From assembly GCA_003693705.1 (NCBI GenBank), contig RBZT01000746.1, positions 1 to 32,889 on the forward strand: 32,889 bases of DNA. Reading direction: 5' to 3'. Shown here piece by piece: positions 9,356 to 32,889 of this stretch. This DNA is from Polymyxa betae A26-41. Lineage: Eukaryota; Protista; Endomyxa: Phytomyxea. Below the pieces are notes generated by a model, which was given only the letters and a program-made list of their open reading frames with translations, searched no databases and was not told the DNA's origin. Numbering within the stretch: position 1 is the first letter of the stretch; every line of letters begins with the position of its first letter. Both the position numbers and the translations under genes were made by a program.

Positions 9356-9509
9356 ACTCCGTGATCCTGTTCATTCATGCGAACGCTGCGGAAGAAACCA
9401 GGCCTGAAATTAGGGCTTAGGGTTATGAGCTTATAAAAATACTAATTTATCAGTTAACTATTGCCTAGATAGATCGAGAAACAAGGAATACCCGAGTGAG
9501 AAGACTTCA

Positions 9510-10120
9510 CGGACAGGTCTCTCCCGAATCGAACGATTGTCTGGTTCGTCGCGGATTCGGATGCGACCCTATAAAAACTATTGTTGAAATTGTGGATGCT
9601 GTCTCAAACTGGTTAGAAATTGCAAGAAAATGCCAGATAGCATTGCGATCATGATGGCTAAGAGCATAGTTGAAGAGGCAACGCCTTTTCAATACAGGTT
9701 GGAAATTCCGGACTAAAAACGATCGAGCAATGATCACATACAAAGCGATAGTTGTTTGTAAATCATCGATGGAGAGCGCTCTCAGGAATCGATTGTCGTT
9801 ACAATCGAGAAAGAGCTTGCGGAGAATAATCTCCCGGACTTCGGTTGAAACTTGTCCGGACGTCGAAGGGAGAAGAACGTAATGCTTCTTATGTCTGATC
9901 TGGCACGATAAACAGCTAATATGGACTACACACAATACACTCATAACAGTATAATCACAGGTGAAGAAACCCTAAACCCTAGCGTTAACCAACTCGTGAC
10001 TCATGAGTTGTTAACCGAAATGTAACATGGACCTCGAGTACTGTGAAATTATCCGAGTCCGTAATAGTACGTCGTAACAGACGCACAGAACAGCGCACCT
10101 TGGTCACCAATGGCAACAGG
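9510..10120 (-). pseudogene. Kinase-family paralog D, downstream part (exon 3 end, exon 4 remnant, exon 5)
   Basis: TDSDNFTVLEVHVTFR vs A TDSGNLTALELYFTFR. RCLFNYALSHHDRNAIWHF vs A RGVFNYQLDEHDLNGIWNL. TR-IVRFGRD followed by donor GTCCGT vs A TRAIIRFARN followed by GTCCGT. A 57-nt intron (9685-9741) sits at the family intron-4 position. Confidence 0.8.
10107..10120 (+). repeat. Left target-site duplication of the LINE (CCAATGGCAACAGG)
   Basis: 13 of 14 bases match 14695-14708 (CCAATGGCAGCAGG). Confidence 0.85.
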
Positions 10121-13100
10121 TCACTCCTATAACTGTTCGCGAGCCGTTGGATCGAAGGGAGGGTGTCTTGACGCCCTCCCTGGTAGGATCCAGGAGAGTG
10201 GCGACGACCAAGACGGAGACGCAGATGGGCCAGGGCTGCCAGCGGGCAGCCGATAAGGTAACTACTCTCCCTACCAGCAGCTCAGGGAGTCCCCGCGATG
10301 ACGCCAGCCGGTCGAGGGAGATGGGCTTGACCCAGACCCCGACTATAGCGGCTTTACGCTGGGCCAGCCGGACTGATATCCGTGCTGGTTACCCGAATCT
10401 CACAGGTCCGAGTTCTGCAAAGGGGCTCAGACAGGAGAAGCAATCTAAAGGGATCTATGATCGTTCAATCTGAAAAATACAATCACCATCGGGCTAGTCT
10501 CGATCAATCTTTACACCGGTCATCGACTGGACAGAAAACCAATGAATATAAATATCAAACACCCCATTTTCCTATCTCTCATAGCCAAACCCATTTTATT
10601 ACAGACCACATCCAGTTAGCAACTACCTCACCCGATCCCATTCACAGAAAAAACGCAGGCATAACACCCAGAATTCAACCGTATCAATATAAATACCAGA
10701 ATACAACTCAAATATACCAATCTCGATCAAAACCACACCAACATACACGTCCAGACCATCGATACCAAAATCCAGCCATCCACTCGACAGCTATTAACAC
10801 CTCGAAAGGCCAGCACAACTTGACGTCACTCCACTGGAAAAGGCGCAGCCTGCAGCAATTCAGGCGATACGTTTTGACCTGCATAAAGCAGCCAGTCTGG
10901 GCCCAGTCCGCCGAAATGACCAACAATAAACTGACACTTTGGATACTTAACTCAATGGGAGAATCTGCGACTTGAAGAAGCAAAAGATAGAATTTACAGA
11001 CTACCACCCCCAGGAAATGGAACCTATAGGCAGATGCCAATTACGGCATTCATGAACAATCTCTCTCAACGCCCAGAGCCAAATATCGAATACAGCAGGC
11101 GCCACAAAGAAACACGACGTAATCTCCATCCTACAGTGGAACGCACAAACCCTATCACAAGAAAACGCTGTCGAGTAAGCCCACCTTGCTTACAAAAGGT
11201 CAATCAATATACTCTGCATTTCTGAATGCGGTCATCGCCGACATACAGTGCAATATTTTGCAGAACTGGACTGGAATACGAGTTGAAGACATTACTCCAA
11301 CTCTGCGAATTAAAATACCCAGAATACAAATTCAATGCATCGAAATCGAAGAAGACGCTGCATTGATTTATCTATATGCCTCCACCAGATGTCCGTCACG
11401 GCACTCGTAAACAGGTTTGGGAACATGATACAGGAACGCATCATAACCAGTCAACTAAAACAAAAAAACAATCATCACCGGCGATTTTAAATACCCTAGA
11501 TAAACGATTCGGGGCAAATCATAAGGAGCACCACACATACCTCAATAGTGTTCTATACCCCATGGGATCACTGCGAATTATTAGTAGCAGGCTAAAACAG
11601 ACACGCGAAGCTTACACACTTGACGTTACATTAGGAACGAAAAAAGCGAAGACAGCAATTGAAAACTGGAAAGTCCTCAACACGTTATCCAGCGACCACA
11701 TACCGACAACATTCATCCTAAATATATAATTTCACGGCAACGTCCACGAGCTAGCAAAAGCAGATTTTAAACATCAGTCATAAAAAGAGCACTCACAAAA
11801 ACTAGCAGAAGGAGGTTGCTCAGCTAGACCCAAATTATATCTGCCTAGACAAAATCAGCTCAGCTCTTAGCAATGCCATTACATATAAAAAATTAAACAC
11901 AAACCAATACAGTTCTGGAATAAGGAGCCGTCGAAAGCCAAAAACGAAAGAAATACAGCGAGACGCTCCATCATTCAAGCACGTAAAAATGGGCAGAATC
12001 TGATCCGACGTGTAATCAAAACAAACCTAAAAAACGAGCTTTTCAAAGACTTTCGCAAAAGCCAAACTTGCACACCTACAACATCTGTAGAATCTGCGCC
12101 TGGACTTCACAGCAACTAACTGACCAAAAAAGTACAATAACAGCTCCACAGCTGTTAGTCGAGGGCCTACTTTAAGCAGTATTCCACAAACAAAGCCTAA
12201 AAGAGGCATCTAAGGACCGAACAGGAGCAGCTCTCTATAAGCTAATCCGACAATTAAATCCAACCACAGCTCAACAAAAACAGCCAGAAAGATTATCCCA
12301 GCAAAATGACACTAGAAGACGATACAGAACAAATTGCAGACACATTTGCAACAATCTTCAAATCAGCAAGGCACTCACCCCTGCGGAAGGGAGCTGGCAG
12401 AACTGCAGCATACGCTAGATGAAATTCGACAGAGCATCCTGACAACCGAAGATTTAGTCATCACAGAGCGCGAACTGAAACAGGCGCTCAAGGCAGCCAA
12501 CAACCGGTCTGCCCCAGGGCCAGACAAAATATCTAATAAGATTCTGACATCAGCGAGCGAAAACACGATTTTTTCATCTTTTATTATGTGCTATGAATAA
12601 CCATATACAATCTGGGGAATAACCACCTAAGCTCAAAACAGCCAGAATTGTTGCACTTCCGAAAGACAAGCCAGGTGATTTTCGGCCAATTAGTCTCTCC
12701 TCAAACATCTCTAAAATTACAGAATTCATAATCCAACATCGAATCAGGCTTTCCATTCAAAATATACTCCCACCTAATCAATTCGGCTGCCGTCCTGGGC
12801 ACTCCACAGCTCAAGCCTTGATGAGGCTCATGCGTTCCTGCGGAACCAGTGCATTCAACAATCAATTCGGATGCATCTTGTACGATGTTACAAAGGCCTA
12901 TGATAGGGTCCCGAGACATATCCTCAAAAAAATGGTTGAGCTGGAAATCCACCCGCAGCTCACAATGCTCACATACAACTGGCTACAGGACCGCCAATTT
13001 ACAGTTACACATAAAGGATGCACTATTAGACTGCGACAGCAATGTAACGGTATCCCACAGGGATCCAGTCTCAGCGTATTACTCTGGCTACTTTTCGTAT

Positions 13101-14694
13101 ATGCTCGATCCTAATACATTCAACATTTACGTTGATGACACCGTCGGTTGGTCCATCTCGCAAAATAAAGATGCAGTAGTGAAAGAGCTGACGGAACAAC
13201 ATGAGACCATGGAAATCTGGTGCCAGAAAAACAAAATCAAAATCAATACTGATAAGACATATGTTCTGTTTAACGAAAGCTGTCCAAATGATAAAATAGT
13301 CACGAATTATTCAACTGTATCTAGAAGGTCGCAGTAAATGTACCTTCCATCTTGATGACAGACAATCCGCCCTTGAAAAACACGAGATGGGGACGCTCAT
13401 AGTAAATTCTCCATGTATATCCATTTGGACAGATGGCAGTGTTCTACAAGATGAAACAAAAGTTTTAGCTGGCTCAGCAGCCTTCGTCAAATGGGGTCTT
13501 CCCCCTGAATTCATACTCAATGAAGATATACTAGACAACCCATCATATGAAATAACTCACACAGTCGACGACACCACAAATGAAATCCGATCTGAGATTA
13601 CAATCAAAGAATACAGACAGCTGACAACAATCACTTCCAGCTATTGAGCTGAACTATTTGCTATTCAGATAGGACTTCATAACGCCGTAGACCTGAATCC
13701 TCAGAATCAATCTATACATCTCTATACAGATTCACTGTCATGTATGCAACAGCTTGCTACGTTACCATATAAACCTCGATATGTCAATCAATGATACAGT
13801 GGCAGATTGTGCTGATCAACTAGCGATATTAACAGCCAATAATCTAGTAGAAATCCATTTTGTACCAAGTGATACTAAACCACCTATTCCAGAAAACGAT
13901 AAAATAGACAAACTGGCAAAGACTGCTCTGAGAGTGGTGAACCATTAGACCATGACCCATTTGTTGGTTCTTACAGAATATTCCTCCACAGAGTTTGGAC
14001 ACACCTTCAGGTTTATCTGGAAAAAGCAATTAGATCGAGTCACTGTACGGGATACCCCTGCAGAGACCCCTTCATATACAGTCGATATCCCATGAAACGT
14101 GGGAGACACACCATACATATCAGAGTATATCACGACCACCCACAGCTTAACAGAGCCCGATCCAAGACATACTCGGTGTAGGGATCATCACCATTAGATG
14201 CGAATTGAACAAGAAAACACATGTCGATATTGTAATCAATATAACGAGACACTGGAGCATCTCCTCCTGAAATGTTCTTATTTTGAGACAGCATTATCAC
14301 GCCACAGGCGTAAATACAGTTCCCAGAGGATAACTAACTTTAATACAGCCCTATGGCAACAGCCCAAACTCATGAGACAGATGTTTCAGAAAGCATACAA
14401 ATATGGATGTCCAATATACATACAACATGTGATAGAAGCCGGGAGACCAGCATGAGATCGAGTCAATGTTTGGGTACAGGGTTCAACTCCCTGTAGGGTT
14501 GGGCCAACAGGTCGCTGCCCATCATTGATCGGTCTCTAAGCCCTCCGTTGGGCTGAAATTCGCTTTTGCCTCTCAAGGGTGTAGGCCTCCGAATGTTTAT
14601 TGTAGGAGAGCACGGATTTTCGGGTCCGTGCCCCGCACTAGGGTTAAAGTGCCGTCCACCTTGCCGAAAGGCGCAATAACTAGTACAATCCAAT
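10121..14694 (+). mobile_element. Non-LTR retrotransposon (LINE) with both ends intact; APE-RT-RNase H-CCHC type (I/Tad1/ingi-like architecture); inactivated
   Basis: APE motifs ILQWNAQ, IITGDF, TLDVTL, SSDHIP. RT motifs SAPGPDKI, FRPISL, QFGCRPGHST, YDVTKAYDRV, GIPQGSSLS, YVDD, KINTDKT. RNase H motifs IWTDGS, AELFAI, LYTDSLS, HFVPS...ENDKIDKLAK. Knuckle CRYC...ETLEHLLLKC. Ends in a (CCAAT)n tail and is flanked by a 14-bp TSD. Confidence 0.93.
11128..14455 (+). pseudogene. LINE ORF2 (endonuclease, reverse transcriptase, RNase H, zinc knuckle) fragmented by stops and frameshifts
   Basis: Motifs occur in the correct order but are spread over many short ORFs in all three plus frames. Confidence 0.9.
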
Positions 14695-14708
14695 CCAATG
14701 GCAGCAGG
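14695..14708 (+). repeat. Right target-site duplication of the LINE
   Basis: CCAATGGCAGCAGG, whose first 5 nt continue the CAATCCAATCCAAT tail. Confidence 0.85.
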
Positions 14709-14914: not shown

Positions 14915-17900
14915 TCAAGAGCGGACTCGGAATGTATCGATAAGCAGATACATAGCCAGGACTATAACGAAAGACCCGCCTACAATACTACAAATGATGA
15001 TCACAAGTTTAATGGAGACGCATGAAGACCCTGAAGTTGCCATTTCAGAAAAACGAAAGTCGTGAGCTGATCATGTTAAGGCGCTTTCATCAAATATTTA
15101 AAGAACGAAAACAGAAACTCCAAAGACGAACATAAAAAATCGGAAAAAAAGTACAAGTTCCGACCTTGCTTGCGCTGATTATCAGAATTGCTTCGCTTCG
15201 TCCCTTCTGTATCAATCTCGTTTCTATCGATCGTGACAATCACATCTTTCGAATCGGTTTCGCAATTCGATGTGGCAGCCATCTCCACGTCTTCCTCTTT
15301 GCCGGAGAGCACCGAAGCATCATGGTCCTCTTGATCCGAGTCGAACGCATCGCCAACAGCGTCTTTCGTTTCCTTCTCGATTTTGTTACTATTTAACTGG
15401 TTCTTGATACTTTCCAGCCCGATTTCGTCGCTAAGCTTGCTCTTAATATTCTCCCGATCTTCATGATTAACAGCCTCTTCCATGTCCTGTTTCACCTCGG
15501 GCTTCATCTCATTCATTAATTGACTTTTCACATTTTCTATCAATTCCGCCTTCAAATCGTCCGCTATTTCAAGTCGGATTTCGGACTTCATCTCCTGAAA
15601 CAACTCCTCCCGAAATTGAATCTGGATTTCCTCCTTCAATTCCGCCTTAACATTCTGTAACAATTCCTGTCTGATTTCCGAATCCAGCACAGCCTTGAGC
15701 TCATTCATTAACTGCGTCTTCATCTCGTTCTTCAATTCCGTCTTCAGACTCTCTTCTATCTTCTGTCTCATCTGCGACATCAACTCAGCTTCCAAATCGC
15801 TCTCAGATTCCGACAATTGCTCCAAATCGCTCCCAGATCCGGATCTCCTTTGATTGATAATGTCATCTTCAATATCACTATTACTGTCCAGATCTTGATC
15901 ATGTAACAAATGCGGGAAATCCAGATATCTCTCGGACCAACGTCCAGTAAGAGGTAGATCACGGACACTGTCAAATATGGGATCCAGTAGAAGGACGGAG
16001 CAGTTCCAGGTACAGGACGGCCACGCCTTCAGCGAGATCTCGTACTGGCCCAGCAGGCCCGGGGCCTTTTCGAACCACGCAACTCCGAGTCGCTGCTTGA
16101 CCACGTCCAGCAGCGTCACCAATCGCGCATACAGTTCGTAGAGGTCGTGGTTACAGACGACCGGATTGCGGGACGGATCCGGACGACCCGCGTACCCGAA
16201 ATCCAGTACGACCAGGCTGACGTTACCATCATCGGTCGCATCGATCATAACTGATTCAATAAAAGTCAGATTTCGCGCATATGGAGCCGAACGTCGGGGG
16301 TCGTACAGTTATTTAAGTGTTGAATATCTCCGTGGGACCAGCCGATCTGATGCAGATGGTGCAGTACGGACAGGATCTGATAGGTGATAGAGACCAGTTG
16401 CTGGGCGGCCTCCGCCGGGTCCGCCGGCACGGACCAGTTCTGAACCGTCTGGCCCTGAACCAGCTCCATGATCATGTAGATATCGGGGCCGTACTGGACC
16501 AGGTCGAGGAGCTGGACGAGACCCGGAATCTGTCCCGAATGACAGAACTGCGACATAAACTCGACCTCACGCTGTGTATCCTCTTGAGCGGCCTCCATCA
16601 CTTTGATAGCAACTTCATGCGTCCCCGGACCACGTAAACATCGACCTTTATAGACAGATCCGTAGGATCCTTCACCTGTTAAGAACTCCGTTCAGAAACG
16701 AGAATTGTTGAAAACTTGAAATCTGCAAATATGAAATGCGGATAGTTTAAGATGTTAAATTCTGTGAATGAAACAGCTTAACAATGCTGCCCGTACCTAA
16801 TCGATCTAATAATTGATATTCTTGTGATAAATCTGATACAAGACGGATTGGCATCATCTTATAGGTCTCGGACACCGGAGCAGTGTTATCGTTACAAAGC
16901 TGCGTGGCTTTGCTGGGAATCAGTTCATATACGAGCTGATACAAGTCCGGATTAAGCGGCTTAATTTTATCTTCCAGATAGTGATGGAAACGCTCGGACA
17001 TGGATAATGTTACCAAGGCTGCGCGTAGCTCCTGTTTGCCAAAATCCCGCAGTGTACTGTGTAATTGAGGATGATTCTCCTCCAACATGGTCCGCAACGT
17101 TAGACTCAGGAGTAACGAAACCCAAGGCCGCCAACGTGCGTTATCACGGACTTTGGAGCACAACCGCAGTGCACGACTCACGACGTATTGTTCAAATTCG
17201 GGGTCGCACATGGATTTGAGGTCTTTGGTCGATTTCTGAATCCTGACACAAGTTATCGAAGGTAGGGTTAGGGTTTAGGGGGTTATTACACTTGAGACAC
17301 CTCATAAATGAGTCGATATCTATCCTTTCCACGAAATTCAGCGGCTAGATCGAAGGAGATTCTCTCATCATGTGATAAATGGAAATCCAATAGATTATGG
17401 AAAATTCTCCGACGAAATCGATCGGATCGATTTTCACACAGACTATAACAGCAACAACGATCAGCAAACCGAACATAAAGGCGCTCGACAAAAAAGAAGC
17501 CGCAAAACGATACGGACATGTTTCTGGCGAATCGAATAATGGCCCTGGTTGACGCCTGCTGAGATGAGAACATAAAGCGGACAACTGGCCCGAATCGCTG
17601 ATGTAGATCAGGCTGGTCGTACAACGCACATAAATTCCAGATCCCATTCAGATCATGTTCATCGAGTTGATAATTGAAGACGCCGCGCCTAGCGAAAGTC
17701 CGAATTTAGAGCGAAAAACGAGTTCGCATCGACGGAATCGGGTTACCAGTGTGTTAATAAGCGATCGGCATCGATATGGGTGAAATAGCGGCGAATTTGA
17801 TCATCGGTGAAAGTGGGAGGAATCTTGCGGAAAGGGGTGAGCGTATTCTCGGTCTTGTATCGGGTCTCATCCGCCCGACCTCGGATTAGGGCCTCGAAGC

Positions 17901-18792
17901 CACTGGTGTCCCCCCGACGATTATTGAACTCTTGGAAGATGAACGTCCAGATATGGGGCGGTAAGCGATCAATACTGGCCCGTCGGGCTCGGTCCACCAC
18001 GTTGTCCGGACTTCTCTTTACTATATCATTGGCAATATCACTATTCAGCTCGTCTTTCTCAGTACTATGACACAGTCAGCTGTAATACATAAAACCCTAG
18101 CAAAAATAATCCAAAAAAATTTCCACAACATTATGGGAATGTTCGGAAAGAAATCTGTTCGAACCTGAAAGTGAAATAAAGTTCAAGGGCGGTGAGATTC
18201 CCGGAATCCGTCACGGAAAAGGCATCGGCCGACATGGATCGGACTATAATTTGTAGTAGGCGCGTCTTCCCATCAAAATAACATCGTGTATGATGTAACA
18301 GACGCAGGAACAGCGCACATTCATGACGCATTTCACGGGGCGAACTGGCCCACAGCTGGACCGCCACGAACACGTATTCTCTATACCGATCTGACGACAC
18401 CCTGCCATTGAGCCATTCAATATGATAGGTAGCGTGTTGGCTGCGACCGTACCGGCCCTCGTCCAGCAGGTATGTGAGCGTGGCCTTCTGTAAATCATGC
18501 AGCATCACGTGGTCGCAGAGCTCGCTGAATTTGGCGGCAAACGTGTCATTGGGCCATGTTGGCCCATCGGATTGCTCCGATGGACGGAGCCGGGAGCTCG
18601 TTCTATACGCAATGAGAATGACGAAAGCGGGTGGCCGGAAAGTGGATAACGTTACATTTCCGAGATGCGGCGGAGTGCGTCCGCGAACTGCTCCTGCTCA
18701 TGATGATGGGACGGGTCGGCGGCGGGGTCGGCGCCGGGCTGGTCCCGGGCCAGTACGACGACGATCAGAGCACAGACGAGATGGGCGAGCAT
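14915..18792 (-). CDS. Paralog A: signal peptide, unknown N-domain, minimal kinase, long stalk, C-terminal TM (10 exons, ~1060 aa)
   Basis: Exons 18792-18656, 18602-18453, 18401-18165, 18064-17747, 17688-17518, 17442-17290, 17242-16797, 16675-16307, 16250-15165, 15030-14915; all introns GT-AG, total 3183 nt in frame. Motifs MLAHLVCALIVVVLA; LGEGSYG, VAIK, REVE, HGDIQHLNNFM, DFG; TM LVIIICSIVGGSFVIVLAMYLLI. Confidence 0.88.
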
Positions 18793-19400
18793 CGGGACCC
18801 CTTTTCCGAGTGGTTGCCGGAGAGGCCGCCGAATCGACCGTTAGGGAATGGACGAATCCAAATATAGACACTGGCGTCCGTGGCGGACTGCGCTCGGGCA
18901 AATATACCATTTTCTGTGGGAGAGTTAAGGGGGGGAGGTTGCCAATCAATCTCAATTTTCATTGAATAGTTGATCGAATCACTCATGAATAATAAATTTA
19001 TAAATATCACCGCTCTATATTGTAACAAACATCCTATTGGATCTTGAAGATTTCTCAAATACAAAATGCTGTATCATCTTTCAGTTCTGCTCTACTGTTC
19101 ACAAATCCATATTATTTCAAAGAGCAACGTTTATGATTCATATTCCTACACCTAAAAGTAATCGAGTTTGGCCACGCATCGCTCGATATTGATTCAAATA
19201 ATGCAGGCTTTGAAAGTTGCCCTCAAAATATCGGATTCAGGAAACTGTATGGATCGGATTATACCTCCATTTGCTTATCTGTCACAATATCGTGTGGTTG
19301 TTTCTTCAGTTCATGGCCTGATTCTGAAAAATCGGCTTCATAGCGACAGTGCGTGAATGTAATCAGAGGTCGTGTTTGAGGAGGAAGTCGTCGGCGGTGG

Positions 19401-19502
19401 TCATCCCCTAGGTAGGCACAGACTCACAGGCACTTCGGGCCCGGTCTGATGAGCTCTGACGATTAAAGCCAGGTGAGAGCGTCCCTGTCCCCATCATCCC
19501 CT
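19401..19502 (+). other. 84-nt segment between 9-bp direct repeats, containing half of a hammerhead ribozyme core
   Basis: TCATCCCCT occurs at 19401-19409 and 19494-19502. CTGATGA (19446-19452) is followed by a GCTCT/AGAGC stem and then G, but GAAA is missing. Confidence 0.35.
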
Positions 19503-20607
19503 TCGATGTCGGTTGAGCCCGACGGCTCCCTACAAAACCAAAACCCTAACTCGCAGTCATTCTTCACACCACAGGACACAGTCACGCAACAACCACAATT
19601 AGCATGTAGTAAAATCATGACAAACCACATGTTACACTATACTGAGCCATAAAAGAATGATTGTAGACAGCATCCAACATCATCACTTAATTAGAATTAT
19701 GTTTTGTAAGAATGTATTAATAATAGAGCCCATTTGGGAAAGCCCCCGTTTTGAAGAAAGCGAAGCAAGGATTTACAGGCGGCTACCACCAGGAAACGGA
19801 CGCCCTGTTCGGAGAAATATCACCGAATTTATTTAGAAGACTAGATATGAATGATAACATGAACACTGACCAAAACACTTCCAACGATGTCGAAGCTTAA
19901 AATTGTGAACTCTTCCAGAATGAATACAAGCACCTCAAAATAACAGCGCACATTCACTCAAACTTTAACGAATGGAATGTATGAGACACAACCAGCATGA
20001 AGGCCAGAGTGAGGGCATAGCCTAGAACTCGGATCCATGCATGGCTGGGTCTCTCTCAACCCTCTCGGTTGGTGCCGATGGGGCTGTCAGAGAGAGGTCG
20101 CCTCGAATTCAGGGTTTCGGCCCTGGCCCATTCGGCCGGCTCCGCCTCTATTCACCAGCTGTCTCCAAGCGTAGCTGTCCGTCGTCGACGACCTCACAGC
20201 ACCATTCCTCGTAGCACTACGCAGTTTCCGCAGATCTTTATGATATTGCAATTCAAGCCATCAAGTTTTTTCTCTTTTCAATAAGCAATTTAGCTTTTCT
20301 TAATCAAAATAGTTTATCATATGTGAACCGCAGCGCCATCGACATTGCTTCCATGTTGACAACTGTATAAAATGACAGACTGAAGCCAGATCAGAAAACA
20401 GCAGCAAAGTAAACTTCGAAAGATGCCAATAAACGAAAGTCCTGAAGAAGGGTCACAATGTGGCAAACGCGCACATATGCAGCCTCTGTGTGGCATTGTT
20501 ACAATGATCAAAATTTGGTGTTTATTGGTGCTGAATATTTCATTGCGTTGCCAATTTAACACAAAACATGGAATTTAACAGAGAACAGCAGACAATGCCG
20601 GTGAAGG

Positions 20608-23600
20608 TCATTTGGAGATCTTAGATAACAGCGGATTCCAATAAAAGCGCAAATACACAATGATGCCGATAGCAACTAGTAAAAGAGCGCTAAGACAACT
20701 TGTAATGACAATCAGAAGAACCTGGGAGGAATTGTCGCTGGTCGCTGTAACGCTCAAATCAGTTATATAGTCAGAAATCTGTAAACTCAATAGATTTGCA
20801 AAATCATGAATCAGCATTGTCGACAAACGAAGTTTAACAAGAATCAACAGAAAACGAAATCGACGAAACGAAAAAATGCCGCATCACAAAGTCACCTTGG
20901 TGAACACGGTCTGTTTTTTGTGGCTCTTGGATAGGTACGATGTTCTCCTTCAGTAGAATTTTGTCTTGAGTAACATGCGGAACCGAACTCATCTTTGGCT
21001 CTTGGAACTCGTTTCTGAGCTGCTCTGTTAACTCAGTCTCTAAATCCTCCCGAACTTGCTCTCTCAGATCATCTTTCATGTGGGCAGTGAAGTCCGCCTT
21101 CCATTCGTCAAGCAGCTCTGCTTTAACCTGTTCTTTGATCATATCCGGATAGTCGAGGTATTTCGAAGGAAAGCCACTTGGGAGAGGATTTGCGCGAACA
21201 GTATCGAATACGGGATCTTGCAGTAAACTGGCACAGTTCCAGGTCGACTCCGGCCATTTCTCGAGAGCAGCGCAGAGCAAGCCCAACTCTCCTGAGGCTG
21301 GCTCATACCACGGCATTCCGAAATGCAATTTTATCGTGTCGAACATCGTTGTAAATCGTTGAAAAACGCTGTCCAAGTCGTCGATACATGCGACCGGACG
21401 TTTCACCCGATCTGGACGTTCAGCGTATCCAAAATCCAGTGCAACCACACGATTATCGGACATATCGAACATAACTGCCAACGATATTAGAAATGAGCAT
21501 CTTGTAAAGAGAAGAAAACGTACAGTTATTGAGATGTTGAATATCTCCGTGATTCCAGCCGATCTGATGCAGATGGTGCACTACGGTCAGGATCTGATAG
21601 GTGATAGAGACCAGTTGCTGACCGGCCTCTGTCTCGTCCGCCGGAATGGTCAATTTCTGAACCGTCTGGCCCTGGACCAGCTCCATGACCATGTAGATAT
21701 CGTTGCCGTACTGGACCAGGTCGAGGAGCTGGACGAGACCCGGGATCTGTCCCGAATGACAGAACTGCGACATAAACTCGACCTCGCGCTGTGTATCAGG
21801 TTGGGAGGCCTCCATCACTTTGATAGCAACTTCATGAGTACCCGGACCTCGTAAACATCGACCTTTATACACAGATCCGAATGATCCGGAGCCTGCAACA
21901 GATAGTCAGCGAAAATCCGAGAAATTTTAAATTGAAGTATCGTGAGTAGTGTAAGCTGACCTATTTTTTCAAGTATTTCGTAATCATGAGATAGTTCAGA
22001 CCCCGTACGAAGATACATTCGTTTGGTCCTGATTAATGGCATGGGGCGATCATCGACTAGCTGAATGGACTTCGATGGAATTAACGTCTTGATGCGATCA
22101 TAGAAGATGGGGTTGTGTATGCTGAAGATTTTGTTCATGACGAAATGAAAATCCGGCCACATTGAGAATGAAACCAGCGCTGGTCGCAGAATTTCATCCG
22201 AGAAATCTGGCATTCTTTTGACAAAATTGGGGTTGTCAGGCCTTTCGACGATTGTTCGCAGAGTGAGACTCAGCAGAAAAGAAACAAACGGCTGAATATC
22301 AGATGCTTCACGGAACTGAGAGCAGAACAGAATGGCATCCTGCAGCAGCTTGATCTGAATCTGTGCTGCAGTCATCCCGTCCGTTATGACAGTTTGCTCC
22401 GGATTTAAGCTGAGTATGAAAATGTTCGGTCAGATGAATGAAATTGAGTGAAAGATATTCGGACCAGTTGAGAAGACCGTGTATCAGCACATAGCGACTT
22501 TCACCGTTAAAACGGGCAGCCAAATCGAAGGCAACGGTTTCATCATGTTTCATGTGAAATTCCAATAACACCATCAGAACTTTAAGCCTCCAGACGTCCT
22601 CATGGTGACCATTGAATACACTACATGCTCCAATTAAGCACCATACAGTTTAACAGTAACGAAAAACCAACAAGAAAAGAAAAATGGAAACTATCATTGA
22701 AAACATCATAATGAAACGGATTAACAGAAAAAGTCACATTTCCTGAATGAATTTGACGATAACCTGGTACGAAAAACAACAAGAAATGGAAAATGAAAAC
22801 TATTACTGAAAACATGACAATGAGACGGATTAACAGAAAAACTCACATTTCCTGAATGAATTTGACGATAACCTGGTACGATGCGATTTTGGAAGCGAAC
22901 AGGAGAGGGGCCTGTGTCAGGAACGGTGTTTGCAATTCTTCAACATTGTACAGTCCGACTAGTCGCCAGATGGCATTGAGATCGTCGGCATTCATGCGAT
23001 ATTTGAAATGGCCCTTGCTGAACAGAAATCAGTTCGATCATCTTTCAAATTAAAAAAAAACTGTTCTAACGAGAATGCAATAATAAGCATGCGGAAAAAT
23101 GTGGAAAAGATTGAAAAATGCTAAAAACTCTGATATCGAAAATGGGTTTTCAAAGCAGTTTTAGCAAAACTTTTAGCAAAACTTCAAAGCAAATCCAGAA
23201 GAAGTGGAAAGAAGTTCAGCTTACAAATCTTCCAGCAGCTCTTCAAGGTCGAGACCATCGAACATTTCTCGAATTTCTTCTTGGGCAGTATCTGGCTGCA
23301 TACGGCGGATCTTTGTTAGCATGACTTCTTGCTCCAGAAGTGTACGATCGGGCCGATCCCCGAATATGTTATCGAAACAGAGATCCGGATCACCGAGACG
23401 ATCTGTGATCTTCACGTTATGTTCGTGAAAGATTTGAGCCCAGATATGAGGAGATAATCGGTCTAAGGTTGCAACCGATAGAAGATCTAAAGCTTGCTCC
23501 GGAGTCTGTCGTGCTATCTCCACAGCTAAATCAATTTTAAGGTCGCCAAACTCCAAACTATATTCAGTCAGCAAATGCAGAATTTTCACAATGAAAGCCG

Positions 23601-24256
23601 TTTAAAAGTTCTCTAAGCAAAAAATAAAAAATACCTGGATTCAAGATATAATTCGAATGCAGTCCGTCCCTGTTCATCTGTAGCAGATAATGCCAGACCG
23701 GATAATGATTCAGCAACGCTTCGCAGAAAGATGGTTTTGGATTCAAATCGACAATGTGAGAGCGATAGCAGTCGCAGGAACAGAGAACCTTCATCTCGTA
23801 GTCTCTCTTTCATCCCCAGCCATACCAAGGTCGCCAAGAACACATACTCCGGCTGACGATCCGGTATGTTACTAAGAACAACGTTCATTATCAACGGAAG
23901 CAGCGTCGCTGGGAGGGGTCGTACCGGCCCTTCTCAAGCAGGTACGAAACGATGTCAAGTTGAAGTTCGTGTTGCATTGTTAGGGTTTTAAGCTGGTTAA
24001 TGCGGGCGTGTATGTCGGGGTCAATCCAGGTCGGTCCATTAGCAGCGAGTGGCTGCAGCCGTGTAGATACTCTAAGTGAAAGAGTGAGCCTGAAGGACAG
24101 CAGGACGTCGGGTACCCCGGCTCACATTTCAGATATCAATGCGATCGCGTCCGAACGCGCATCCAGTGCAGTGGGTTCGGGGTCGGTGGCGACCGGCAGC
24201 CCGGACTGGACCAGTACGACGAGGGCGATGGCGACGATGTGACGAGCTGACAGCAT
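20608..24256 (-). CDS. Paralog B: signal peptide, unknown N-domain, minimal kinase, stalk, C-terminal TM (10 exons, ~902 aa)
   Basis: Exons 24256-24126, 24071-23925, 23871-23635, 23557-23225, 23017-22847, 22620-22465, 22409-21961, 21892-21524, 21474-20896, 20744-20608; total 2709 nt in frame. Motifs MLSARHIVAIALVVLVQSG; IGSGSFG, VAIK, HGDIQHLNNFM, DFG; TM VLLIVITSCLSALLLVAIGIIVYL. Confidence 0.88.
22661..22879. repeat. Tandem duplication of ~110 bp spanning the exon 5 end and donor site of paralog B
   Basis: Units are 22661-22770 and 22771-22879. The core acggattaacagaaaaaStcacatttcctgaatgaatttgacgataacctggtacga is identical apart from one base. Confidence 0.9.
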
Positions 24257-26214
24257 CGGTTCGACGACGATGACGAAGAGGTGACCCTCTAATAATGGCA
24301 GGTCGACTGCGAGGTCACGCCTGGGTCAAAGGAATCACAGAGAAAAGAGAGGCCGCGCTCGCAATTCAGACTTGGTGGGATGCGCAACCTGCTTGCTCTG
24401 TAGAGATTCAGACAATGACTACTAAATGACACCCCCAAGCCCCTGATGCTCGAGCACGCCTTGCTGGTTAGGATTGACGCTGGCCACGGATTCTGGAAGT
24501 TGCAGGAGTGAGTTGTCTTAGAGATATTATTAAAGGAGATGTTAGAATAATGTGGTGAAATGAGGTCTGGTCAATCCCATGTGTTAGAGATCAGAAAGAG
24601 GTAGTTCCGGTTGATCCGAAGGGGACCGGCTGTTGATTGATCTTGAAATTAATCCATCATTTGCCCTGCCAATGGCCAGCTGTGGCTGTCCAATTCTATC
24701 AATACCATTACAATACCAACAGGTATCTTCATGGCTCGTTCCGCTGAATGGAGATTTAAAGCTAGATTCGCCTCCAGGTTTTCGTACCCTCGAAAGCCCC
24801 TCCCATAGTAAAAATAGTTTGTCGCTGACGGTTGGAAGAGGGTCGCAATTCTCATGAAATCAAGAAAAAATGACAATTTGTTCAAATACTTCCAGGTTAT
24901 AGAGTTTCTGTCATCAATAGATAAATCGTTAGTTGTTGACACCCTTCATTAACAAACTATAAGCCATATACTTTGTTGAATGCATCACGTCGTGTAGTGC
25001 AGGATTTGTTTGTTTGAACCTATTAGCTTGAATTGGAGACAACAAGAGCTGCCTGCATATGATTGCATTTGGAAAATGAATCGTCCCCAATCAGATACAA
25101 ACAATGAAGATGCTCGGAACGGAAACTTCAGCCAGTTATCACAGAGGTACTCTGGCATCTTGAAGACCAACAGAGAATATTCTCCAGTTAATCGAACTGT
25201 AAGTGGGGACGGGGTCGCGACTCATCCGTGCTCGAATCCGCTGGGATCTGCTTCTTTTCGAGTCGCCCTCGTGTTCTCTATTAGACTCAGCATGTTGGGT
25301 TGATAGATAAACATTCCCATAGTGCTCTGCTTATTCGGGTTTTCAGACATGGGAGCTTGGAAAGTTCCAGTGGAATCAGGTTCCGACTCAGTCGCAGTCT
25401 GTTCCGCCTCCGGAAGAGTGCAGCTGCTCCATAGGCTGCGCACAATATTCCGAAGGTGTGGGATCGTCATTTCCAACATGAACTATATATATTGTCAATA
25501 ATAGATCAAGTATAAATAGCTTGTTATTATAATAGTTGCCGATGTCTACATACCGTGGAAAGAGGTAGCTCCTCCAAACCCTAAAACCTTAACTGGAAAG
25601 GGTTTGGCTTTGCTGGCTGAACACGGTGAGACTGTAGAGATAGCGACTAAAAAGACAGCTTTTCGACGAATTCAACGTCAGCAGTGTTCGAAAATGACGG
25701 CCTTCGACCATCCTGCTGAGGCGATTCCGGCCATTTGTCAGAAGAGGCGCGGTACCGTTAGGGTTTATGCTGTGACCATGCTGCTTGTCGCTATGAACAC
25801 TGCAGCGTTGCTGATGCAGAAGCAGCCGGGAGCATGCGCTCAGCTACGTTTTGGATTCGTGTTACTGATCGCTCTCTCTGGTTGCCCAAGGTATGAGCTT
25901 GAAATGTGAAACAATCAGCAAAAACTGCTGGGTCTATCAAGGGCAGACATAATGATCTCCAAATCACGGTCATTACAGCGATTTGCAATGGACGGCTCAC
26001 GCTATCCAATCATTGAAAAAATCGAAGATTGCGAACCTTTACGAAGATATTTGCCCGGTATACATGCGGAGCTTCTCGGGTAGAGATTGTGCTCGTTTGT
26101 GCTATTTATGGACTGAGAAGTAATTTCTGTAGCTCTCTATCCGGCATCAAACAATATGTAGATGAGTTCTTCGGAAACTCGCAGTTTTCACGGACAGGCC
26201 CAAATTCAGCCATA

Positions 26215-26620
26215 GTCGCGGACACCAATTGGGCCAACGATCACGACAAGCGCAAACCTGTTGGAGGCTACACCTTCATTATTCATGTCGGATTAATCGA
26301 ATACAATTGCAAAAAGTTACCGAAACAACCGAATCGTGCGCCTTCTGTAAGTCACCACATCCGCCAAATCGGTGCGCAATATGCTTCATGAATTCGATGC
26401 CATCGCCTCAGATAATCTTCCTAGAAACCAGGGATGCATCAGTTACGGCAAGCGCAGCGTCAACCAAACATTCATGATGCACATTGACCTCAAATACAAC
26501 TTACTTCGAGAAGCAATAAACAGAGGCAGATTCAATCTTAATCGGGTTCCTACATCCGACAATTTAGCCGACATCTTGTTATGGCTCTAGTTAAACCACG
26601 CTTTCCGGAGCTGCGGCAGC
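26215..26620 (+). mobile_element. Ty1/copia LTR retrotransposon remnant (RNase H region)
   Basis: ADTNWANDHDKRKPVGGYTF...CKK resembles DADWA.D...RKS..GY.F...SKK. NQGCI...HIDLKYNLLRE...VPTSDNLADIL resembles DNQ.AI...KHIDIRYHF.RE...VPT.DN.ADIL. Frameshifted; no LTRs seen. Confidence 0.85.
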
Positions 26621-27643
26621 CACTGAATATCGAAACAGTTCACAGTCTCAACTGTAAACGATTTTGTGTTTAGTGTATATTGCGATTCCTGTTGTATAGT
26701 CCGTATTCGCGTCTCCGTAAATGGATCCACTCTTCCCCGATATATGTTGCTAATCCAATCGAGAACAGAATTCACATTCTGATCGTTCCCAGTCACACTG
26801 CTACCGAGTATGAACTGAGGGTCTGTGTTGGATCCGAGGTTTATGATATAAACATCATCTATTCCTGAAACGCTTCATGGAACTCCGCCACGGTGCCATA
26901 GGTCGAACTTATCAAGGCCGTCGATCTGCTCACCCAGGATTTTACAATCAGGACATCAACACTCTCCAAGTTCATATTCAATTTATGTGTCTCCAGTAGA
27001 TCCTCCGTAGACTTAACAGCAGATACCATCACAATCCATCGTTTTGACGAGGTTGTCGAAACCTCAATTCGATGTGAACGCAGATTGAATGAGAGCAAAA
27101 GCGAATTATTGATATACGCGTGGGCCAGTGCGGCCGGAAAGATGAGTATTGGTCACGTGTCCTTCAGGTAGAGTAGGTCCCGGTAGTTGTACTCCGAGAT
27201 GAGGTCCGGCCTCCTTTCCGCCCCGACACTTTTGTCTCCGTCACGGACTACTGTGGATCATTTGCTCCAGTGTTGTGTTGGTAAATCTTCTATATCTGTC
27301 TAATAGGGAACAATACAACACAGAACAAATTCGAGTTTTGTTTAAGAAAGATTGAAGCGGTCGGATGGATGGTCCCGCGTTATCTTTGACATTTCAGACA
27401 AGCAGTGTTAGAGAAGGGGTGTTAAAAAGACTCACGCAATTAAATATTTGCTGCTCAGATTGCGCCCCCGATTACATAAACTGCGATGGACTGTTCACGC
27501 AATTAATGAATTGACACACTGTGAACAGCCGGGGGCTTTCAAGTGGTGAAAAGCCCGTCACGGGCCTTTCACCAACCCTTCCCAAAAGCCTCACAATCCC
27601 CCGTTTGTATCCTCTTTATTGCCAATCGGGTGTGTGCATCGTC

Positions 27644-30600
27644 ATGGCTTCCGTCAGGCGCTTCTGCACTCTTCTCGCCATCGTCGTCATCGTCGTGCTG
27701 GCCGACCCGAACCAGGCCGCCGTACCAGACCCGCGTCCCAAAGCCGTGATACCGATCAAATTTCTATCGCAAATGTGATTTATGCTTTCGCTCGTCGTAC
27801 ACTGCCCTACCCTGAAACGTTTCATCAACAGGACCGCAATTCGACTCAAACCACGTCCCGGGTCGGAAGGTCCAACTTGGGCTGACGACGCTGTCGAAGC
27901 CCGATTTAACGCCCTCGTCACTTATGTCCGTAAGCGTGACCTTGCCACGGCGGTCGTCACTTATCTCCTCGACATGGGCCGGTACGTCCCGCCACTCGCG
28001 GGTGGCCGCACTACCCTTGATTGCTATAACGTTTATTATTGCGTTACAGGAAGGTCCTGGATCGTTACAAGGAGTACGTGTTCGTGGCCATTCATCTCTG
28101 GGCCCGTCTGCCAGAGCGGCTGCGTGACCAGGGCGGCCTCTTACTGCAGCTGCTGGCACAGACGCGCTGCTGCTTTGATGGCAAGCACGACCTGCTGCGC
28201 AGAATTGCCAGGTCCGTGTCGTCGGAGGCATTGTCTGCTACAGATGCAGAAGGTCGTACTCCGCTCCAGTACTACCTTAGTTTCAAGTACGTCTCACGTT
28301 ACGTTTTCTTTATTATAGCTGGGAGCGCCATTTCTTACGTTACGCATCTGCTGGTATTGGCTGATATTGACACACTGCTGATAGGTTTCATGATATCAAC
28401 TTGGACGTTGCAGCCGCATTTGCGCTGAAAACTCCGAAACCCGTACTGATCCGTATCCATACGGAGACACTCGATCGATTACCACCCCATATATGGTGTC
28501 GTGTCTTTTATCAACATAATACTGCATTAATTATTCAGATGGGAAATCGATCTGCGTTCAATCAGAACGTATTCGGTGCCAAGGCGGATCGAACTCGCTG
28601 GGAGACCGCGGTCGTGCTGGCCCGACTCGCTCGAATACCGACTCGATCTGTGAATGAGATCGCTCGTGCTCTTGATGGTGTTGAGTTAACCCAACTATTG
28701 ACCGATTGGTAATCTGATCGTATGTTTAAAGATTGTCAAACCTATAGAACGTTGCCATTTTTCGCAATTTTTCATTATTTGATGCATGATGTTGAGTTTT
28801 GTTGAATGTTACTGAAGATGTTGGAAATGTTTTTGTATAGCAAATCTAATGGAAGATTAATGCCTCTCTATGTATACAGTGCTGGACATTTCAATTACTT
28901 TGTTCATGATCATGATCTTCACGCACTATGGAATTTATCTGGTCTATATAATCAAACGGAACTCCGTGATCTCTTCTGTCAACAAGTCCCATATATGTTT
29001 GCATCAATGCGTTCCTCATTTGCTGCTATCGTCCACTTTATTAACGCCACGTATGTCCGATTATGTTTCCGAACATGCAAACCCACCCTGATTTGGTAAC
29101 ATCAGCATTATGTCCGGAAACTGTAACGATGAGTGGAGATTACGTATCCTACGTCGTCTGACAGTGTTCCATTTGAATCACGACCTTATGGTTGGGTACT
29201 TATTAGCACAACATTACAGAAATAATGCGCGATATCTGCTCATTGAATATATCACTTTAAAGTCAGCTCATTAATGGTTCCAACAACTTCATCGATTGTT
29301 TGACTTTGGATTTAGCATATCAAAACAATTCAAACTGAACGTTTGTTCCTCCGAACAACGTAATTTGGATCATTGTCAATATTCAATTATCCGGACTGCA
29401 TTACGCGTCTGTTCCTCAGTTCGAGAACAGCCAGCGGTTCGGCTTTGGAGTTCACTCCTACTGAATCTAACACTGCGCGCAATTCTATCACATCAGAACT
29501 CCGAATTTATTATTAGTTGTAGGTTTCCTGTCCTACATGCTGAACAATTACGTAAAGCGTTCCTTATGGTATCCATGATGCCCAACTTCCATTCAATCAT
29601 GAACCGTACGATCGGCCAGAATAAGCGGCCTCTTCTATATCAAATTCGGAATCTATTACCGGAGAAAACCATCCAAATGGCCGACCATCACAAGGAATGC
29701 TCTTTGGGAAAGCGCCGCCTGCCACTCCGAATCGGGTCCCATCCATCTCAAGATTATCGTTTCATAGAACCATTAGGTCCGAGCACGCTGCCTTCAAATG
29801 TTGTTTTGACGAGTTCACTTCCCGTTCCTATATTTTCAAAATCCTCTGCTCAATGCCGTTTCTGATATTTCTATCAGGTGATGGGTCGTTTGGGACAGTA
29901 TACCGTGCGGTGGCTTTAAAGCTTCCGGGCAATCCGGAAGTAGCCGTTAAAGTGATGCCGTCGAAGGACCCGAACACGAACCGTGAGGTCGCGTTCATGT
30001 CACGATACTCTCATTCGGGACAGATTCCGGGTCTAGTCCAGGTCCTGGACCTGGTCCAGTACGGCCCGGATACATATGCGATCATGGAGTTGATCAAGGG
30101 CCAGACCCTACAAGGCAGGGACATACCGACAGATGCCACCGAGGCCGCCCAACAACTGATTCACGGCCTGTACGGGGCTCTGACCGTACTGCACCAGCTG
30201 CATCAGATCGGATGGAATCACGGAGATATTCAACATCTCAACAATTGTACGTTGCAGCCTTCTGGGCGATTTTCGCTGTTTTTTATCTTCGTTTACGCAG
30301 TTTTTGTTCTAGTTTCGTTGCGCTTTTTTTACGCACTTTTTCTTACCATTTGTTTCAACAATGTTTATGCTATCTGTCCCGTTTTGCAATCCGAAGGCTA
30401 ACCTCTGATGGTAGTTATGATCAAAACCGCCGATCAGAGCGTGGTCGTACTGGATTTCGGATTCACACATAGGCTGAACCTGGCCGACTATCCGGTTGCC
30501 TGCAACAATGATCTGGACCAAATCTATGAGAAATTCGTGCTTGAACTGGATACCGTGAAGGAGCGGGTCGGTACGGCCTGGTATGAGACTTCGCCGGGTC

Positions 30601-31373
30601 TATTGGGCCAGTTCGAGACCGCTCTCCGCAGCTGGCCGTCTAAGACCTGGAACTGTGTTAATCTTCTGCGGGATCCCATATTCGATCATGTTCGGGGTCC
30701 TGCTACAAGCTCGCAAACGAAGTCCGACGCTGCGACTCCGCCCAACAGAAGTGTAAAAGGACCCGATTTCCTAAAGGGACAAAATCAAGAGAATGGGTCT
30801 TTGAATAATGTGACAAATGCGATTCGGAGTGGACATTCCAATTCAAGTCCCGAAAGTCCGGAAGTCGATACATTAACGATCGATAACGGATATATGAATG
30901 AATATGAAGAACGTAATAATGATCATGATATGAATGTCGCCGGATATAATGACAATCACATTCCAGGTGAGCATATTCATAATATCATTGATCAAGGTCA
31001 ATCCCAACCAATTCCTGACTGTATGTTGCCAAACGATTTTGTCTTTGCTGTTACCTATCGATATTTTACTTATTTATGTTTCCCATCGGTATTGTATGCT
31101 TATGTTTCCTATATGCTGTGCTACTGCTTATTTTCGAACATTTCCAATAAGCTGTTCTTCTTTTTCTGTATATTTATCATTGATCTAATTGAAATAATAG
31201 CTAATGGGCAGCATTCCTCGAAATATGTGATCATATCGCTCTCTATTATTGCTGTTCTATCTATACTATCTATACTATCTATTTTCTATTATTGTCGTCA
31301 TCGATACTCACAAAGCCGTCATCATACAAAAGCTGAATCCCCAACGATGAGCTCTCCTGTGGATATCGCCTAA
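27644..31373 (+). CDS. Paralog C: signal peptide, unknown N-domain, minimal kinase, Asn/Asp-rich stalk, C-terminal TM (10 exons, ~907 aa)
   Basis: Exons 27644-27774, 27832-27981, 28050-28286, 28385-28708, 28880-29050, 29106-29261, 29316-29776, 29878-30246, 30415-30966, 31201-31373; total 2724 nt in frame (the last donor could lie slightly later). Motifs MASVRRFCTLLAIVVIVVLA/DP; LGDGSFG, VAVK, HGDIQHLNNFM, DFG; TM YVIISLSIIAVLSILSILSIFYY followed by RHR. Confidence 0.88.
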
Positions 31374-32889
31374 TATTGATAGCCATTCTTTTACCACATC
31401 TTATAATATGAATAAATACAGTATTTAATCATTGCCAAGCGATAATAAGGGATTCTCTCTCGGTTTATGATACTCAATACAAATGTGATTCAACCAAGTT
31501 GCCATTTCATCTTGCCTTTTACCTTGTGAAGAGGCAAGGATTTAGGGTTAAAATCGCCCTTTCAAGACTCTTGTCTTTTGTAGCTGATCTTAATCATTCG
31601 TTTCTTGTATCACTCTGGAGGCATTAAGTTTATCGATACCTTACTTTATCGCCTCTGGCATTTCGTAAAAACTGTGCACTTGCCTTCACCTGTTGGTACT
31701 TCAATAGGTTTTCCAGATCACAAAGGCAATTCGAGCTGTATTTACGTTTGTGAGCTTCATTGCGAACTCCACAAGCAAACGGAATGGGGGTGCAAAACGT
31801 TTGAATTCGGACGGGTTGCTAGGTTAGGGTTCTATGGTACACCTTAGGTGGCTTTCTTGCCTCCCCATCAAACTTTAAAATTTGAACTTTTAGGAAAAAT
31901 GCCGTCACAGAGCATAGAGCGATAATCGCTTACATCAGAGACTAATCGAAATGATTCATCATCGGCATTAATCTGAGAAGAAAATCTAAATGCAGCAAGC
32001 TCGGATATCAGGGCGGCTTGATATTGGGTAGTCATTAGAATAGCGATGATCCGAAGCATCTTAAACTCATCATTAATTGGCCGCATCGTTTTGTCTTTCC
32101 GACCTCAATGGCTCTGTCTCAGTGGTATCAAAGGACGCCGGGGTCGTTGTGCTTGAATAGAAACAGCCAGCTGATGGCATCGATACAGATGTCAAAGCGA
32201 AATCTGACTTATCAAAAAGCGATCGCATTTGCTTCCCAGGTGCGTTTTTCAGTAACAATCTTTACTCGAAAGATTGCAATAAAAGAATCAACAGAAGCTG
32301 CGTTGAACAAGGCGCACTCTGAATTTGACGCGCTCCTTTCCCGCCATAAAATCTCTCCTTTGCCTCTTCACACATTCATGATAGTCTTCGTCCAACATAA
32401 TAACAATCCAGTGGATCTACGTCTTCACCAGCAACTTGTAGAAGAGCTGGTTCTTATGGAGCCGTGTCGTATGTCCCAAGCAGCCCAGAATGCGACTCCC
32501 TCGTCGAACAGTGTCGTCGGTTCCAGTCTTGTCAACAATGGCCGTCTGTTATCTGAGATTGTGAGCCATGCCAGATAGAAGCATGTAATATCCACAGCTG
32601 AAGTATCAGCTGCGAGCGCAAGAGCATTAAATAAGTTGCATATCGCCTTCATTCCATGGACTTGCCAAACGATAAGGATTGCCAGAAAGATCGCCATTAC
32701 CTAGCTCAGCGTCGAAAGTCGTATTCAGAATTCGACGTAGGGTCGCAGTATAGGAGAACAAATCAGAAGTGAATTGTATATAGGATAACAAGGTCTGGTA
32801 CTCGAGGTATGACTGTCTTGACCGTACCATATCTAGCAACACCCTCCTCGTGCCGAGTGCACCAGAAAAAACGCACTCAGTGCGACGCA

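Follow-up and report, generated by a model that had tools for sequence, protein, structure and literature searches.

Three ten-exon kinase genes on a Polymyxa betae contig

The window analysed here, a stretch of 32,889 nucleotides (positions 1 to 32,889 of contig RBZT01000746.1, assembly GCA_003693705.1) from Polymyxa betae A26-41, carries three paralogous genes, here called A, B and C, which encode predicted kinases with a membrane anchor at the C-terminus. P. betae lives inside the root cells of sugar beet as an obligate parasite and transmits viruses to this plant. The order of parts is common to the three genes: a signal peptide, a helical region of ~500 amino acids (aa), a kinase domain, a stalk, one transmembrane (TM) helix and a short basic tail.

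14915..18792, minus strand: gene A, 1072 aa, ten exons (18792-18656, 18602-18453, 18401-18165, 18064-17747, 17688-17518, 17442-17290, 17242-16797, 16675-16307, 16250-15165, 15066-14915)
18748..18792, minus strand: gene A, signal-peptide-like segment, aa 1-15 (consensus anatomy)
15970..16830, minus strand: gene A, kinase domain, approximate limits (motif reading)
15008..15960, minus strand: gene A, stalk, 281 aa, acidic, with a 4-residue hydrophobic periodicity
14939..15007, minus strand: gene A, C-terminal TM helix; the tail behind it has 7 aa, two of them Arg
20608..24256, minus strand: gene B, 902 aa, ten exons (24256-24126, 24071-23925, 23871-23635, 23557-23225, 23017-22847, 22620-22465, 22409-21961, 21892-21524, 21474-20896, 20744-20608)
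24203..24256, minus strand: gene B, signal-peptide-like segment, about aa 1-18 (consensus anatomy)
21200..21990, minus strand: gene B, kinase domain, approximate limits (same motifs as A)
20653..20721, minus strand: gene B, C-terminal TM helix; the tail behind it is short and has Arg/Lys
27644..31373, plus strand: gene C, 907 aa, ten exons (27644-27774, 27832-27981, 28050-28286, 28385-28708, 28880-29050, 29106-29261, 29316-29776, 29878-30246, 30415-30966, 31201-31373)
27644..27703, plus strand: gene C, signal-peptide-like segment, aa 1-20 (consensus anatomy)
27832..29740, plus strand: gene C, N-terminal region of ~500 aa from exons 2-7, without a named domain
29745..30690, plus strand: gene C, kinase domain, approximate limits (same motifs as A)
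31227..31292, plus strand: gene C, C-terminal TM helix; the tail behind it has ~27 aa and starts with basic residues

Spliced in silico, each gene has nine GT-AG introns with the phases 2,2,2,2,2,2,1,1,1 and no internal stop, which bears out the equivalent intron positions described in an initial annotation of this DNA, as do the exons 3, 5 and 8 of 237, 171 and 369 nt in all three genes. The remark in that annotation that the kinase is invisible among the open reading frames did not hold, since the exon-8 frame by itself matches Pkinase (E 2e-14). In the translations, codons spanning exon junctions were held as X, and database searches were run exon by exon. Comparing A, B and C, the proportion of nonsynonymous differences (pN) lies well below that of synonymous differences (pS) in exons 2-8 and at the start of exon 9. 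Exons 2-7 share 32-50% identity between copies, and their pN of 0.30-0.50 against a near-saturated pS of 0.67-0.95 indicates that they are coding and constrained. The most conserved exon is exon 8, and between A (16307-16675) and B (21524-21892) its pS falls to 0.19 with 87% amino-acid identity, compared with a pS of 0.6-0.95 in the other exons, which points to homogenisation by gene conversion confined to the kinase exon. Paralogs elsewhere in the genome (loci with L numbers) support two of the exon joins independently: in L025, which lacks intron 7, the helical region continues directly into a complete G-loop, and in L033, which lacks intron 8, the C-terminal half is colinear with the exon-9 profile (90 columns, E 1e-4). 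On this genomic evidence, the structure of A, B and C as intact ten-exon paralogs appears solid.

Some details of the models deserve mention. Introns 2 and 5 of gene A and intron 9 of gene C are in frame and free of stops. An acceptor at 28413 for exon 4 of gene C was rejected because it breaks the frame; the consistent acceptor is at 28384. In gene B, a 109-nt tandem duplication (22663-22880, 91% identical) has copied the end of exon 5 and its donor into intron 5, creating a second possible donor.

Kinase core, membrane topology and N-terminal region

The kinase domain of gene A reads as a G-loop cut by intron 7, VAIK, the alphaC Glu, an HGD loop with Asn at +5, DFG, an alphaF Asp 17 residues further on, and alphaH-alphaI; B and C likewise retain the G-loop, beta3 Lys, alphaC Glu, catalytic Asp and Asn, and DFG. 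This set, including the HxD motif with Asn at +5 and a bilobal fold as modelled for L033, belongs to the eukaryotic protein kinase (ePK) superfamily, and the N-lobe profile finds ordinary ePKs as its best matches (RSK2, E 6e-11; ULK2, E 2e-10). Several elements of a canonical full-length ePK are missing, namely the APE motif, the alphaG helix, the Arg of subdomain XI and the Lys at HxD+2, this catalytic-loop Lys being replaced by Gln two residues past the catalytic Asp in A, B and C. Neither an APE motif nor an alphaG region was found in any family member. An Asp downstream of DFG, invariant in ten aligned members, is read as the start of alphaF, which would leave only about 11-19 residues between DFG and alphaF across the family. 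The chain end aligns by eye with alphaH-alphaI and has Thr at the position of the subdomain XI Arg; as the APE Glu and this Arg pair with each other, their joint loss is coherent. One Cys lies 2-3 residues ahead of the alphaF Asp and another where alphaI starts; both are present in ~10 members, both absent in three and mismatched in ~5, which makes a disulfide in place of the lost salt bridge no more than a guess. With the APE motif, alphaG helix and subdomain XI Arg gone, the kinase is probably constitutive. The domain of L033, which is intronless, models as a shortened kinase fold (predicted local distance difference test score, pLDDT, of 62, with a weak C-lobe) with three helices past the DFG position, and the model matches kinases over ~200 residues (Z about 10) without any family standing out. 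An adenylate kinase reading of the C-lobe profile was rejected, as the matches were non-significant.

Signal peptides in A, B, C and the paralogs were judged by consensus anatomy. All three genes start in a signal-peptide-like manner, as initially annotated, with a short n-region, a 9-residue hydropathy of 3.6-3.9 and a -3,-1 site, and each of the ten N-termini examined across the family shows a short n-region, a hydrophobic core and a -3,-1 site, usually followed by an acidic or Pro-rich continuation. At the other end, exon 10 holds one TM-grade segment in each gene with basic residues after it, and between the two ends of the protein the best internal 19-residue hydropathy reaches 0.92 (A), 1.30 (B) and 1.18 (C), so that the single late TM first described, with no further one ahead of the kinase, stands. 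For the remaining loci, a TM was scored as a 19-residue uncharged, Phe-poor hydrophobic window with at least two Lys/Arg no more than 15 residues away and a stop no more than 45 away; since T-rich introns can mimic TM helices, a null comparison was made. With criteria and windows that were fixed after the loci had been seen, 11 of the 17 other family loci carry a TM and basic tail just past the stalk, compared with 30 of 554 random windows (5.4%, p about 1e-10); when three near-duplicate pairs are collapsed, the 11 of 17 become 8 of 14. A twelfth locus, L053, has a TM-like segment past its stalk, and L021, L027, L028 and L035 each offer good splice sites for a last intron in phase 1. Several TMs start with helix-breaking Gly pairs (A, L029, L030, L031, L037).

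A signal peptide directs entry into the endoplasmic reticulum (ER) and a late TM stops transfer, leaving a basic tail in the cytosol, which is the type I orientation. By these established membrane rules, the signal peptide, late TM and basic tail would place the kinase outside the parasite cytosol. The recurrence of the TM with its tail among the other loci and of the signal-peptide anatomy in every N-terminus examined agrees with the lumenal or extracellular kinase proposed at the outset, and the predicted features give good support to a type I topology that puts both helical region and kinase outside the cytosol of the parasite. Were the protein held instead by an uncleaved N-terminal anchor or a glycosylphosphatidylinositol (GPI) signal, the kinase would come to lie on the same, non-cytosolic side. 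The layout of receptor kinases (receptor-like kinases, RLK; receptor tyrosine kinases, RTK; TMK), with a TM between ectodomain and kinase, is not what we see: no internal 19-residue window exceeds 1.3, and exon 7 of L025 runs into the kinase.

The stalks differ in length, with 281 aa in A, 104 aa in B and 95 aa in C, and range in the family from ~95 to several hundred residues. In the stalk of gene A, the autocorrelation of hydrophobicity is 0.32 at lag 4 and -0.10 at lag 7; its part at 15460-15800 has a 4-residue rather than heptad periodicity and contains 12-nt-based repeats. This suggests a right-handed coiled coil lengthened by repeat expansion.

For the N-terminal region, searches of Pfam, PDB and Atlas gave no match. 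Exon 4 models as seven helices, and no fold match was obtained for the model (best Z 4.7). An F-box reading of exon 4, to which the look of its motif had pointed, was discarded, as none of ten members matches any Pfam family at E up to 5 and no F-box appears among the fold matches listed. Exon 3 of gene C finds 13 proteins in several stretches, and all seven of those scanned are ankyrin-repeat proteins; with Pfam Ank matching none of eight exon-3 copies, the end of exon 3 resembles at most one degenerate ankyrin motif. A search for an internal repeat between exons 4 and 7 found none. The N-terminal region was met only together with a family kinase or in family fragments. Its copies on contigs lacking a kinase match are no fusions to other domains; they proved to be a fragment at a contig end, broken copies or a far-diverged pseudokinase member.

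The family in P. betae and its relation to other kinases

Genome-wide searches covered 1001 contigs with 27,085,814 bases of the P. betae assembly, a draft described with 1001 contigs, 27,085,946 bp and 45.1% GC (PMC6328671). The family comprises ~21 loci, 20 of them kinase loci from two genome searches, to which a wider iterated profile added none, and one a far-diverged member reached through the exon-4 profile, with a degraded kinase and a Pro-rich stalk. In a tree, 18 family rows form one clade with respect to the best database matches (support 100/100), within which A, B and C group together (97/98). Long forms resemble A-C, and in short forms (L026, L032, L034) the signal peptide directly precedes the kinase and no TM was found. 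Catalytic motifs (G-loop, catalytic Asp or DFG) are lost in L023, L024, L033 and L053, in-frame stops lie in the C-lobe of L029 and L030, and L031, L036, L052 and L054 appear disrupted or truncated. Overall, this is a lineage-expanded, fast-evolving P. betae family of predicted type I membrane kinases, rich in pseudogenes. L035 and L055, at the starts of contigs C857 and C497, may be two halves of one family gene close to L028. Furthermore, a 165-aa partial protein filed under Beta vulgaris (KMS93723.1, BVRB_028610; 805-base contig) is 100% identical, along 44% of the query, to a member of the P. betae family, which suggests parasite DNA contaminating the beet reference assembly.

Searches outside P. 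betae used gene C and paralogs on other contigs as queries, and pieces of A and B were compared with Pfam. These word-based, length-limited searches found no relatives beyond generic kinases (22-38% identity) and ankyrin proteins; a metagenome scan gave generic kinases only (26-39% identity), and no Plasmodiophora brassicae protein was found with the family profile in a similarly word-based and length-limited search covering roughly 190-600 aa. No search run exon by exon matched the architecture to a named family, in line with the first impression that it is unrecognised, and no description of it was found in the plasmodiophorid literature, in a coverage excluding two 2022 P. betae genome papers. 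The family is apparently undescribed and, with its inverted topology, a variation on the theme of exported parasite kinases.

Among such exported kinases, some members of the coccidian rhoptry kinase family (ROPK) have non-RD HGD-type loops, as the P. betae family does, and ROP2-clade proteins bind the vacuole by N-terminal amphipathic helices, a mode of attachment different from the C-terminal TM on a stalk in P. betae. The two families are alike as lineage-specific expansions of signal-peptide kinases and pseudokinases in an intracellular parasite, with an N-terminal extension ahead of the kinase (ROP2/5/8/16/18; PMC3682881). ROPK have inserts in the kinase and keep the APE segment, whereas the P. 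betae family has deletions instead, including the region between APE and alphaF. The defining WC motif, which closes alphaF and has its partner Cys in the alphaG-alphaH insert, is lacking in some ROPK clades (PMC3682881); the P. betae family has no WC at the alphaF end and no alphaG region, and no ROP structure is among the 60 PDB sequence matches and 50 fold matches listed. Plasmodium FIKK kinases are likewise parasite-expanded, exported and divergent, with long N-terminal regions, but the P. betae proteins have VAIK or VAVK in place of the FIKK motif in subdomain II, keep an intact G-loop where FIKK kinases lose it, and possess a C-terminal TM; PfFIKK13 ranks 48th among the fold matches listed (Z 8.4), no better than generic kinases.

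Kinase-fold domains also act outside the cytosol in Fam20C, Four-jointed, POMK, VLK and fungal CotH, the CotH proteins of Mucorales being surface-anchored at the C-terminus. The lumenal and surface kinases known to us fall into other kinase-like families and are either soluble or anchored as type II or GPI proteins; they differ from the P. betae family, whose N-lobe scores best against ordinary ePKs (RSK, ULK). A short or absent activation segment, a missing APE and a reduced C-lobe are shared with minimal kinases (Bud32/PRPK, RIO, bacterial OspG/NleH), from which the P. betae family differs in keeping alphaH-alphaI. The single match of this kind was 8k20_B, a 226-aa kinase chain, around DFG and non-significant (E 0.21), and the reduction of the core looks independent of the minimal kinases.

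Closer in lineage, the related plasmodiophorid P. brassicae has signal-peptide kinases, SSPbP22, SSPbP61 and a 20-member cluster, proposed as effectors (PMC7317818, PMC12503489), of which SSPbP22 is active in vitro (PMC7317818). These proteins differ in being soluble, and the word-based, length-limited searches returned no P. brassicae match that would suggest homology with the P. betae family beyond the kinase superfamily. They come from pipelines that removed TM proteins, and since plasmodiophorid effector surveys drop proteins with a TM helix (PMC7317818, PMC12503489), a TM-kinase family such as this one would be missed systematically. In microsporidia, proximity labelling identified clade-specific, expanded TM-anchored families exposed to the host cytoplasm, including NemLGF3/4 with a C-terminal TM, and kinase expansions are reported in two species (PMC5423893). 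The likeness to the P. betae family lies in clade-specific expansion and the C-terminal TM anchor; the lineage is unrelated, and the parts of that study available to us describe no protein with signal peptide, kinase, stalk and TM (PMC5423893).

Proposed function and its alternatives

In the mechanism we propose, the type I kinase would travel through the ER and reach the wall-less plasmodium's surface within the root cell, where it would be held out on a stalk of variable length and, using host ATP, would phosphorylate host proteins next to the parasite; the divergent helical region would probably select partners, and paralogs with degraded catalysis could bind instead, as is seen among the rhoptry kinases. 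Phytomyxids get into host cells in the form of protoplasts and grow there as plasmodia that lie between the host's organelles (PMC10953367), so that a type I protein of the plasmodial membrane would face the host cytoplasm or an adjoining space. The expanded, fast-evolving family also shares its evolutionary signature with the host-exposed families of microsporidia (PMC5423893). We favour, at a little under an even chance, a surface-displayed kinase that acts on host proteins with host ATP. Somewhat less probable is the stronger statement that the plasmodium is coated with active type I minimal kinases facing the plant cytosol, fuelled by host ATP and phosphorylating host (and possibly viral) proteins, an architecture that we found described for no other eukaryotic parasite. 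Several points weigh against surface display. [quoted passage not shown] The cytosolic tails have no tested sorting signal, which makes the surface location a prediction, and both localisation and phosphotransfer activity are predicted from the genes alone. Many paralogs are degraded or broken. Moreover, because the catalytic-loop Lys is Gln, substrate class and activity are uncertain, and a non-protein substrate or weak activity is possible.

The main rival, unlikely yet ahead of the other alternatives, keeps the topology and has the kinase act in the secretory pathway or on the zoospore or spore surface, where it would modify secreted proteins or glycans made by the parasite itself, in the manner of Fam20, POMK, Four-jointed, CotH and Toxoplasma WNG1. 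Topology alone cannot tell lumen from surface. Several atypical secretory and small-molecule kinases have a non-RD loop without Lys and no APE segment, which the P. betae domain matches, and the paired Cys before alphaF and at the start of alphaI, which often co-occur, would be compatible with a disulfide. Housekeeping lumenal kinases, however, tend to be few and conserved, while this family is expanded, fast-evolving, pseudogene-rich and undetected outside P. betae in the word-based, length-limited searches, which is how host-exposed families look (PMC5423893). Less probable again is that the TM serves as a trafficking anchor, with the ectodomain being cleaved from it and set free in the host cell to work as a soluble effector kinase; the long exposed stalks, the Gly pairs at the start of several TMs and the short members with the signal peptide on the kinase and no TM found would suit shedding, but no conserved cleavage motif was seen, and stalks of such lengths suggest display.

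We regard it as improbable that the proteins serve on the surface as adhesins or scaffolds, with a kinase fold that binds host proteins but has no meaningful catalytic role: this would account for the four members that have lost the G-loop, catalytic Asp or DFG, but A, B and C keep these motifs along with the beta3 Lys, alphaC Glu and catalytic Asn, and exon 8 is their most conserved exon. Marginally less likely still is an error in the topology itself, with exon 10 unspliced or an N-terminal segment that is no signal peptide; the product would then be a secreted soluble kinase or a tail-anchored protein whose kinase is cytosolic. The exon joins of A, B and C rest on genomic sequence, T-rich introns translate as hydrophobic segments, exon 10 is poorly conserved in sequence, and intron 9 of gene C is in frame and stop-free. 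Nevertheless, the TM with basic tail occurs far above chance even with Phe-rich windows excluded, the last intron keeps phase 1, and ten N-termini share the signal-peptide anatomy.

Sugar beet infected by P. betae shows no symptoms, yet the parasite carries the rhizomania virus; how viruses are taken up at the surface of the plasmodium is not understood (PMC11784302). If this reading is true, surface kinases would provide the first enzymatic handles on that interface, and markers for the membrane that the plasmodium turns towards its host. Also of interest for kinase structure is the reduced core, which the family offers in active-looking as well as degraded versions.

The remainder of the window holds a remnant of a fourth paralog (9507-9944, minus strand) with an exon-5-like stretch at 9597-9677 (20 bits) and no kinase exon detected downstream. 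It adjoins a retroelement-like region at ~10100-14700 on the plus strand, where broken-up open reading frames with endonuclease-, reverse transcriptase- and RNase H-like pieces resemble, by eye, a decayed non-long-terminal-repeat retroelement. Fragments like copia-type RNase H and transposase-associated proteins, also read by eye, lie between and after the kinase genes (~25600-26600 and 32100-32580). On the plus strand, 4538-7208 holds a further signal-peptide gene, whose first long frame has no Pfam match and which has a Cys/His-rich end near 7050-7160, and two open reading frames at 464-877 and 1274-2362 show, by eye, Myb/SANT-like tryptophan motifs.

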